This document shows positions 9,432 to 12,400 of a stretch of 64,000 nucleotides of DNA, piece by piece; position 1 is the stretch's first letter, and every line of letters starts with the position of its first letter. The stretch is taken from contig NC_087247.1 in NCBI RefSeq assembly GCF_037042905.1, positions 52,452,001 to 52,516,000 on the forward strand, read 5' to 3'. Position numbers and translations under genes: made by a program. The notes beneath the pieces were generated by a model. It saw nothing but the letters and a program-made list of their open reading frames with translations. It ran no database searches and was not told the DNA's origin. This DNA comes from Lytechinus pictus (Eukaryota).

Positions 9432-12400
9432 TTAGAGGTTATCGATCTGACAGTGATCACTGTTGAAGTGAAATACATTAAGATATCCACATCGAGCAAA
9501 GTGATTCCCTGTGGTGTACGGGCGTGTAGTATCGCTTGCACTACCTTCGCATGTTGGCTGGTTACAATCATTTTCCCATTGACCACTCAGGACTGCCTTG
9601 AGTTCAAACCATCCTCCCTCGGTCTTACTGCAGTCCATCTGAATATCCACCATCCAATAGTGTTCTCCCCATTGATTGAGATCAGTGTAGCCGTAACCAT
9701 GCTGCGCAACATTGCTGGAGTAGTTAGGATCATTGGTTGTCCAGACCATAGGAGTGCCATATGCAGACTGTCCATTATGATTACCTTGGTCATTCTCTGG
9801 ACCATGCCAATCAAGAAAATCATCACCTTCTTTCCAAGAACCAAATTCAGTTCCATGTCCATCAATATTGTGTGTGATAGGAATGGCACATTCATCTGTG
9901 TCTGCGTTGTTGTTATTACAACCACTACGTTGTGAACCATCGATACCGCCACGAAGGGCAACAAGTTGCCCAGTTTGTGTTGCCTTTTCAACAAAAATGA
10001 CAGTGCGTTCCCATCCAGCTGGGGAAGTCGGGTCTGGTCCTTGGGTAAGTTTTTGAGTTGATCCTTGGGTTGGCCCTTCAGTTGAAGGTTGGGTAGGATG
10101 AATGGTAGGATTTACAATGGGCCCATTCTTTGTAGCACCAACATGGATGATAACCATATTCTCGTCATTGTTTGTATTGATATGAGCATGTCCAGAATCG
10201 TCCACGTCCACAATATCATTACCAGTGCAGGATTTAGCATGTGAATCATAATCCACCACTGCCAAATTACAGTATTCACCTTTAGGGAGACCAGTATATC
10301 TTTGCTCATCAAAGGTTGAGCTTCCACGAGACATAGCAATGTAAGCACTATTACCTCTGGAAAAGGCCATCCTGTCATAGTCACCCCAGAAGTTTTCTAC
10401 TGTTAGACTACCAGCCTCGTTACGCCATTGGACCATGTTCTTGATAGGTCTCCAGCGGTGTTCACATACCCAACCAACAGTATCAGACGATTCACATGTT
10501 CCATCGGCTTTGAATGTTGGATCTTGGGTATTGTAATTTGCATCAGCTGGAGGTCCATGCCAGTGTTCACTGAATTTATAGCTGCTCATGATTCGTGGGA
10601 AACCATGTGGCCATGACAACATAAAAACAATAGCCCGCTGGTAATCTTTACCATTTTTAAATGTTAAAACAGAACCGCCACCACCATGTCCACGTTGGTT
10701 GTCATGGTTATCAACAAATACAACTCCATCTGCATTATTCAACTTAACAGAATTATATTTACCAAAGTCCTTTAAACCCCCTAACGATCTGGAACCCTTA
10801 AATGTCTCGCTGACTTCTCTTCCATAGATGAAGTCTGTGACTCGAGCTATTTCATTATAGTCCCAACAAGTGACAGCTTCTCCTGTATCCTGGTCAATCA
10901 CTTCCTGGAAGAAGAATGGTCGGGTGTTCTGAGGGAAGTACTTGGTGTTCAGGTTGTTTGTTCCATCAAAGATAGCCTGGAGATGATTAGGCCACATGTG
11001 CTTGGCAGCGTCAATACGGAACCCAGCAACACCAATATCAATTACCTTATTGAAGTAGCCTATAATATTCTGTCTGACTGACTCAAACTCGTGACACAGG
11101 TCTAGAAGCCCAACCAAATTACAGTTGCGTACCTGGATGGATTGATGAATTAAAAATAGAAGAAATAAACAGAATAAGAAATTATTAAGCTGTGAAACAT
11201 TGCAATATATTATCATCTCCCTTGTCAACCATCCAGGCATTTGAGAATCATAACATAAATTTGATACTCATAAAATGTGCTGTAAATTGAATTTCATCTT
11301 TATGATGCTCTAAATGTCCCTTGATAGACCGTAATTCTAAAAATATTGATTCTTCTCAGTTTTAAAAAGCCTACCACATACATTTAACAACACAATTATT
11401 CATAACCCTTGCAAAATTCACAGTCTTAATATTTCCCTCCATTTCACCTATTGCTTTCATCAGAGTTATTTGGTAGAAAAGCGACCAAGTTTAGCACTAA
11501 CGCTGAACATGTCAAAGATGTTACGGTTCTGTACAGAATATCATTGTGGGATGGCAATAGATAATATTACAAAAATAGTTGAAATTATGAAAAAGGGGGT
11601 AAAACATTATTGTGATCTGCTATTCAAGTCATGAAATTGCCTTCACATCACAAAAATGGCTTTCCTGATGGAGCACTCTGGGTTGGGAATAGGAAGAACA
11701 AGTCCAATGCTCCTTCAGGGTGAAGATATAAGGAGTACCATGGTACAGGAATAAATTTCATCATTGAAAAGTGACAGAAAGGGGAAAGGCTGTAGCCTAA
11801 CCTAAGCACATAGATCTGCTGTAAAATCTGAAGAATCACAAAATAGTGTCTGGATGACAAGCGTTTAAGCACCCCCAATGTTTCCTAAGGGGTGCCGCGT
11901 GTATTATTCTCAATAGGCAGACCCCCTGGAAATCAAGTAGGTGTGGCAAATTGGAGAAATGTAAAGAAAATGAGCAACATTTTGTGTTAAAATATTTTTT
12001 TGGGGGGAGGGGGGGGGGCTTTTCAAATTTCTCAGGACCCAAATGACCCTCATTTTGTAGTGAAACATTTTTTTTGGCTTGTCAAATTTACTTCAGGACC
12101 CCCTGTAAAAAAATATCATCCCCAAAGTCCTGATGCAATTGAACATTGCGACCAAGTAACGCAATTTGCAAATTCATTGTGGCGCATGAAAAACAATTTA
12201 AAGTGCATGTTCTCAAACTTGAGGAAGAATGCATATAACTAATATATATCATGGTATAATTATGTACTACTTTAATTGTGAAAATTCATCTAAAGGGTTC
12301 GGCCATTCGGCTGCACAAGATATTCAGTTCGATCCAATAATTCTTTTTGTAAAAGCATTTAAAACAGGAATGATAAGAATATATTTCGGTCTGATTCTCT

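Follow-up and report, generated by a model that had tools for sequence, protein, structure and literature searches.

A sea urchin α-amylase carries a C-terminal domain homologous to a bacterial amylase 'propeptide', with a predicted CBM20-like fold

A 64,000-nucleotide stretch of the Lytechinus pictus genome (contig NC_087247.1, positions 52,452,001 to 52,516,000; hereafter the window, in whose coordinates all positions are given) contains on its minus strand a gene for a secreted, animal-type, chloride-dependent GH13 α-amylase. Behind domain C and a flexible linker, this enzyme carries a tail of 193 residues (9435 to 10013), which is homologous to the C-terminal 'propeptide' of the amylase of Pseudoalteromonas haloplanktis (AHA), shares an exon and an mRNA with the catalytic domain, and is predicted to adopt a fold like that of carbohydrate-binding module (CBM) family 20. 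With a probability of roughly 0.6, the tail is an enlarged CBM20-like α-glucan-binding module that is absent from Pfam and serves a secreted digestive amylase, and not a secretion helper.

The initial annotation had noticed a continuation of about 190 residues beyond domain C and a linker, and had pointed to a likeness to the Pseudoalteromonas propeptide and to a patchy occurrence of similar domains on invertebrate amylases. Translation of positions 9435 to 10013 yields 193 codons that contain every motif it listed and run to a stop codon at 9432 to 9434. Since catalytic motifs, domain C, a 38-residue Pro/Thr/Gln linker and the tail all lie in one open frame of 602 residues (9432 to 11240, minus strand), the fusion is not an artefact of gene prediction. 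A search with the 193 residues of the domain alone against 5.8 billion sequences returned 90 matches and bore out this likeness: named α-amylases of Pseudoalteromonas, Shewanella, Alteromonas and Paraglaciecola match 98–100% of the domain at 43–45% identity (E 4e-37 to 3e-34), the closest named bacterial match being that of Pseudoalteromonas sp. P1-9 and not that of P. haloplanktis. The patchy spread is equally real: identity to the domain is 53–61% in echinoderm amylases and 39–50% in those of molluscs, decapod crustaceans, a brachiopod and a nematode. The occurrence of the domain on invertebrate amylases as such is already known.

The likeness to the AHA propeptide and its Alteromonadales relatives extends over the whole of the approximately 190 residues, and includes the blocks RTV.F, GQD.F.RGG, CAIPI, LDW.G, GTP..WTTN, LN.WG.HYWMLD..MDC, GWFE.K, WE and NHFA.CG. 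Both tails are placed alike: each belongs to a chloride-dependent amylase of the animal type, in which a flexible linker joins it to domain C. Animal copies differ from the AHA type by an extra cysteine pair (155/188), which a short insertion precedes. When 1.84 billion representatives were searched exhaustively with HMMER, 525 clusters, counted at 50% identity, scored at E<=1e-3 and 123 of them at E<=1e-30; one apparent giant among these hits, P0105 (5035 residues with 30 'stretches'), is Pro/Gly-rich low-complexity sequence that the profile does not match and was discarded as a false positive. An alignment of 76 members has 12 invariant and 20 near-invariant columns, and the likely disulfide pairs are Cys32-Cys42, Cys128-Cys175 and Cys155-Cys188. 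Cys150 (9564 to 9566) is an additional, unpaired-looking cysteine found in one of the 76 members and also in P0001, the best database match, from Lytechinus variegatus. Pfam scans of the window domain and of all 76 members returned nothing relevant and no Pfam family, and sequence searches of all PDB chains with the single sequence and with the profile (E<=10) found no match. By its sequence, then, the tail is a member of the Pseudoalteromonas-type amylase C-terminal 'propeptide' family, which has no Pfam entry.

The structure of the domain was predicted with AlphaFold2 from the 76-sequence alignment. The model is mostly β and confident (predicted local distance difference test, pLDDT, 96.2; predicted template-modelling score 0.92), and because the domain sits after domain C and a flexible linker and is modelled confidently by itself, it is regarded as an independent domain. 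In a Foldseek comparison with the PDB, in which no match reached E<1e-3, chains with a CBM20 take up about 45 of the top 50 places; these are domain E of cyclodextrin glucanotransferase, the glucoamylase starch-binding domain, STBD1, GDE5, Bacillus cereus β-amylase and SEX4, followed by CBM25, laforin, CBM41, CBM26 and CBM48. A structure search of the ESM Atlas placed CBM20 clusters in rows 4–9, directly after members of the family itself. A replicate model (pLDDT 71), for which 11 bacterial sequences with the Pseudoalteromonas domain at their head were used, left the ranking of folds unchanged. The structural alignments span model residues 1–186 and cover only about 90 of them, so the CBM20-like core must be broken by about 70–90 inserted residues. 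These fall at approximately residues 24–43 and 49–118 and form Trp-rich loops with several invariant tryptophans. The predicted tail thus has a CBM20-like β-sandwich core with inserted Trp-rich loops, and the model as a whole is a compact, soluble, disulfide-bonded β-sandwich with no membrane β-barrel. The inserts account for a tail of 193 residues, about twice the size of CBM20 (about 100 residues); it also has two to three disulfides, and holds the C-terminal slot that CBM20 takes in Bacillus β-amylase and Pseudomonas G4-amylase.

A second line of evidence comes from profile–profile comparison. For CBM20, 43 sequences from metagenome loci were aligned, and when hhalign compared the untrimmed family with this alignment, residues 119–153 (family string 'YW..v....GWFElK....WE') matched the CBM20 string 'W..v.lp.G.eyKf...v.WE.g.N' with P 0.0017. 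With the inserts trimmed, the match becomes collinear from strand 1, where 'TVIF..T..GQ..f.rG' meets CBM20 'VtF.v.a.T..GQ.iyvvG', to the WE motif (P 7e-4 to 1.8e-3). The two matches score 25.0 and 24.2, whereas 60 controls with permuted columns scored 11.9±2.8 and 20.2 at most, and the reversed alignment scored 15.9; a CBM20 alignment of just three sequences gave only an 11-column chance match. The residues paired by hhalign are W120 with the CBM20 strand Trp, K139 with the conserved Lys, and W146-E147 with WE, and across the 76 members they are conserved in 76 (W120), 74 (K139), 71 plus four with Phe (W146) and 76 (E147) sequences. On our own mapping of the sequence of Aspergillus niger glucoamylase, W146 and K139 presumably correspond to Trp590 and Lys578. 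This agrees with the residue numbering in PMC4965820, according to which CBM20 site 1 consists of Trp543 and Trp590 and site 2 of Tyr527 and Tyr556. The CBM20-like model, together with a profile match that is weak though above controls and falls on Trp, Lys and Trp-Glu, favours the guess of the initial annotation that the tail is an uncharacterised carbohydrate-binding module. No paper found in a search of the open literature links the domain to such a module, and on that search both the assignment of the predicted fold and the naming of candidate residues for binding appear to be new.

Another module, CBM69 (the starch-binding domain of AmyP, PDB 5X5S), is likewise the C-terminal module of a marine bacterial α-amylase and was at first believed to be related to CBM20 and CBM48 (PMC5355875, PMC10223318). 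At about 145 residues, it has terminal flanking cysteines and, as is reported, a strand topology unlike that of CBM20 (PMC10223318). Membership of the tail in CBM69 was rejected, as 5X5S was unmatched in the sequence searches of all PDB chains, the profile search included, and lay outside the top 50 in the fold searches. A match to a known, characterised CBM family, which the initial annotation had named as a refutation of its proposal, was not found at family level in the Pfam and PDB searches.

In the proposed mechanism, the tail is a non-catalytic module tethered to the amylase by the flexible, probably O-glycosylated Pro/Thr linker. We infer that a surface platform of near-invariant aromatic and polar residues would bind α-1,4-glucan chains, the candidate residues being W146-E147, K139, W120, W69, W91 and W60, several of which lie within the inserted loops. 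Within the gut lumen, such binding would keep the catalytic domain on insoluble particles of starch, of floridean starch or of glycogen and would raise the substrate concentration locally. The tail would presumably stay on the mature enzyme, as the sizes of molluscan amylases hint. An abalone amylase with the tail (P0230; ABO26611.1/BAM74657.1; 694 residues) has a calculated mature mass of 73 kDa, or 53 kDa without the tail, and the amylases purified from gut fluid have masses of 82 and 58 kDa in abalone and 80 and 59 kDa in Aplysia (PMC4141080). By size alone, these values suggest that the tail stays on the working enzyme.

Several observations weigh against the assignment as an α-glucan-binding module. 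None of the 76 members matches the Pfam model of CBM20 (CBM_20, PF00686; hmmscan, E<=10); the tail is a distant CBM20 relative and not a CBM20 member. The hhalign probability of the CBM20 match is just 15–26%. A counterpart of Trp543 is found in W60 only when the inserts are trimmed, W69 being the other candidate, and the position of the site-2 residue Tyr527 is occupied by the non-aromatic residues Q, V, S or N. At residue 19 (9957 to 9959) the window copy has Ala, where 73 of the 76 members have a core Phe. The domain also occurs on subtilases, on reprolysin-like, M4 and M64 proteases, on a trypsin, a phosphoesterase and others, partners that suit a more general anchoring or export role. The P. 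haloplanktis domain is removed after export (PMC1766363), and P0230 is tied to the purified 82-kDa abalone enzyme by size and accession pattern only. As to residue 19, the stretch reads GQLVALRGG in the window copy and GQDMFIRGG in the family; P0001 likewise has Ala, and the model is still confident.

The strongest competitor, which we nonetheless consider unlikely, is a general surface or polymer anchor whose ligand is not an α-glucan: an algal wall polysaccharide, chitin, mucus or glycocalyx, a bacterial exopolymer or marine particles. Such an anchor would keep many kinds of secreted enzyme from diffusing away and would localise amylases to the food particle or the gut lining instead of to the starch as such. 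It would explain the breadth of at least 20 partner types, which include subtilases, metalloproteases, trypsin, phospholipase D (PLD), a phosphoesterase, lectin- and PKD-rich giants and a limpet EGF protein. It would also suit a domain that occurs almost exclusively in Alteromonadales-type bacteria of the sea and in marine or aquatic invertebrates. Ligand specificity does not follow from a shared CBM fold, and the site-2 aromatic of CBM20 is not conserved. Against this stand the nearest 20 structural neighbours, all of which bind α-glucans, and the identity of the residues shared with CBM20, namely the Trp, Lys and Trp-Glu through which CBM20 contacts glucans. Partner diversity is also seen in bona fide CBM20, which occurs on non-amylolytic proteins (laccase and trehalose-synthase clusters; laforin, GDE5). 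Finally, α-glucan-active enzymes are by far the commonest identifiable partner class of the domain. Among 89 representatives, the Pfam partners are Alpha-amylase (11), PKD (5), CBM21 (4) and Subtilase (4), with GH14, GH31, CBM20, trypsin and thermolysin seen once each, and bacterial carriers beyond α-amylases include GH14 β-amylases, maltotetraose-amylase-type enzymes, a GH31 fragment, CBM21 proteins and a PLD-CBM20 protein.

In bacterial genomes, searched with the 11-sequence bacterial subset of the 76-sequence alignment, 185 candidate loci were confirmed, mainly in marine Alteromonadales and their neighbours; the carrier genera are Pseudoalteromonas, Alteromonas, Colwellia, Glaciecola, Rheinheimera, Saccharospirillum and Catenovulum. 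Of five carrier genomes (G001-G005), only one yielded a canonical CBM20 (PF00686), and this match (L085) looks CBM48-like rather than CBM20. A sample of 301 Gammaproteobacteria had CBM20 in two. In the marine bacteria that carry it, the AHA-type domain may occupy the niche of CBM20.

Less probable again is the role first suggested for the Antarctic bacterial enzyme, that of a secretion helper, propeptide or intramolecular chaperone that is cut off in the linker and that animals would retain as inherited baggage. Cleavable C-terminal domains are common on secreted proteases of marine bacteria, and 187 of the 230 located copies of the present domain are C-terminal. According to PMC1766363 (citing Feller 1998 and Tutino 2002), the bacterial propeptide is a structurally independent domain that a secreted protease cuts off at Ala-Ser↓Ser-Thr once outside the cell, and Pseudoalteromonas hosts do not strictly need it for secretion. 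Feller et al. (1998, JBC 273:12109), cited there, described it as taking part in the crossing of the outer membrane in E. coli. The Ala-Ser-Ser-Thr cleavage motif is missing from the Pro/Thr/Gln linker of the urchin enzyme. Animal hosts, unlike the bacterial ones, lack an outer membrane; all the same, the 12 invariant and 20 near-invariant columns extend across animal phyla and bacteria, and the tail is kept in four Lytechinus paralogues. Forty-three of the 230 copies are N-terminal (24), internal (19) or tandem. Tandem copies occur in several proteins, and P0091 (2094 residues) has an α-amylase catalytic domain followed by six of them (754–2080); such an arrangement is typical of modules that bind starch and is difficult to square with a propeptide. 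The approximately 80-kDa molluscan gut-fluid amylase (PMC4141080), too, is of a size that implies retention of the tail. An export-only role is thus unlikely, since animals have no outer membrane, the model is soluble and disulfide-bonded, about one fifth of the copies are not C-terminal and the domain is conserved across bilaterians; the cleaved chaperone that the initial annotation had offered as an alternative is accordingly the less likely of its two proposals. An outer-membrane translocator or autotransporter-like helper in particular was rejected, in view of the soluble sandwich model, the 43 copies that are not simply C-terminal and the dispensability in Pseudoalteromonas reported in PMC1766363.

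An artefact, whether from bacterial DNA that contaminates the assembly or from a gene model joined wrongly, would account for the bacterial affinity of the closest non-animal relatives but is so improbable as to be ruled out by the location of domain and catalytic core in one exon and one frame, the three GT..AG introns, the mismatch-free spliced contigs that run from exon 2 to the 3' untranslated region in two studies, the four paralogues on four chromosome-scale contigs and the echinoderm orthologues at 53–61% identity.

The amylase gene has four coding exons, all on the minus strand, which were located by mapping P0001 and then refined, and its introns are all of the GT..AG type. Coding exon 1 (18080 to 18225, from tblastn of P0001, with a GT donor) contains the start codon, the signal peptide, cut before GDEY, and the mature amylase N-terminus. 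Coding exon 2 (13781 to 14028) encodes the N-terminal part of catalytic domain A, and coding exon 3 (12550 to 12695) the domain B region. Exon 4 as a whole extends from 11132 to 9432. Its first part (10128 to 11132) encodes, by translation of the open frame, the remainder of catalytic domain A, with NHD and another catalytic motif, and domain C; it is followed by the linker (10014 to 10127; residues 516–553 of 746), the C-terminal domain (9435 to 10013; residues 554–746, 21.6 kDa), the stop codon (9432 to 9434) and the 3' untranslated region (8900 to 9431). Splice refinement left a single stop-free frame, whose product has 746 residues and a typical signal peptide. The exon 4 product is 96% identical to residues 181–746 of P0001 (tblastn), a 746-residue 'alpha-amylase-like' protein that carries PF00128 and is 98% identical in the C-terminal domain. 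Catalytic motifs, signal peptide and a spliced, expressed gene are thus all present in this animal-type amylase.

Expression is documented by two spliced contigs, one of 2524 nucleotides with zero mismatches from run X1 and one of 3249 nucleotides from run X14 of a second study, both of which pass through the domain into the 3' untranslated region, to 9181 in X1 and to at least 8900 in X14. Together they cover the gene from exon 2 to the 3' untranslated region without mismatches and join exactly the modelled exons, that is, 13781 to 12695 and 12550 to 11132 (the latter reported as 12548 and 11130, a shift of +2). The loose end of the X14 contig at 14028 continues into the end of exon 1. In two raw RNA runs from 2026 (X18, X19), of which about 6% each was sampled, the gene was uncovered, a result that is uninformative on expression. 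The Pfam family Alpha-amylase_C (PF02806) was undetected in domain C of the window paralogue (10128 to 11132); it is present in most other echinoderm amylases among the matches to the domain. The catalytic-domain Pfam match on the last exon of the window gene is weak (E 0.0034).

Two intronic stretches behave as repeats. At 14167 to 14200, in the intron upstream of exon 2, contig depth reaches 1,000–1,750 in X1 and X14, and reads that leave this stretch enter tRNA-like sequence (GGTTCGATTCCC). It is probably a tRNA-derived short interspersed nuclear element or another high-copy repeat; ARAGORN found no tRNA gene within the window. In all four runs, unrelated contigs and reads are drawn to the short stretch at 12026 to 12090, with 'goes back' joints and numerous loose ends; the stretch appears to be a dispersed repeat outside the transcript.

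The Lytechinus genome contains about ten amylase loci, and four of them, on four chromosome-scale contigs (C1, C3, which contains the window, C9 and C11), carry the tail. In the six tail-less loci (C2:6625416, C16:2210313, C4:6929587, C6:9544751, C13:19641646 and C13:28063992), the last-exon frames comprise 270–353 residues and stop at the end of domain C. The window copy is 59% identical to the copy on C9 and 39–45% identical to the remaining paralogues, and looks like a divergent paralogue. The split into long and short urchin amylases parallels the 58/82-kDa pair of abalone and the 59/80-kDa pair of Aplysia. Off amylases, animal copies are found behind EGF repeats in the limpet Patella caerulea (P0023, 312 residues), in an uncharacterised protein of the shrimp Penaeus japonicus (P0024, 431 residues) and in an ESM Atlas cluster of 182-residue mollusc proteins, where the domain apparently stands alone. 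The domain must therefore have been shuffled within animals too.

In an unrooted maximum-likelihood tree of 95 sequences, one branch (Shimodaira–Hasegawa-like approximate likelihood ratio test, 87) parts the animal from the bacterial copies. All 26 named animal copies lie on the animal side, together with 17 unnamed representatives and a metagenome amylase (P0089), and echinoderms, crustaceans and molluscs cluster there roughly by phylum; the bacterial side holds the 16 named bacterial copies, again without exception, and the remaining metagenome rows. This separation indicates an old shared module, not a recent graft. The bacterial-type fusion described in the initial annotation is to be qualified in this respect. 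The tree fits one old origin followed by vertical descent and loss and, being unrooted, does not give the direction of transfer. Bilaterian GH13_15/24 amylases were likely acquired from a proteobacterium (PMC7003070). Module and catalytic domain were probably inherited together from the last gene common to bilaterian and marine gammaproteobacterial amylases, and the module was probably lost later in many animal lineages and in six of the about ten Lytechinus paralogues. A wider scenario is put forward tentatively, at somewhat less than even odds: the AHA 'propeptide' would be the founding member of a large, uncatalogued CBM family of at least 525 clusters that derives from CBM20. Bilaterians would have obtained the module, already joined to the amylase, in an ancient exchange with a marine proteobacterium; the two-module enzyme would be the ancestral bilaterian amylase, and its binding module would later have been lost in vertebrates, in insects and in many paralogues.

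What this tail does has been a matter of debate since the 1990s: a helper role in secretion was proposed in E. coli, and the tail later proved dispensable for secretion in the bacterium's own genus. On animal enzymes the tail has so far served only as a marker of inter-kingdom gene transfer. Should the domain fail to bind glucans, a general anchoring or export role would gain strength. If α-glucan binding holds true, it would explain why animals have retained the tail, why both long and short amylase isoforms occur in molluscs and sea urchins, and why Alteromonadales, which largely seem to be without canonical CBM20, have joined this module to their starch-active enzymes. A family missing from Pfam would then be gained, and the annotation of hundreds of marine enzymes would be improved.

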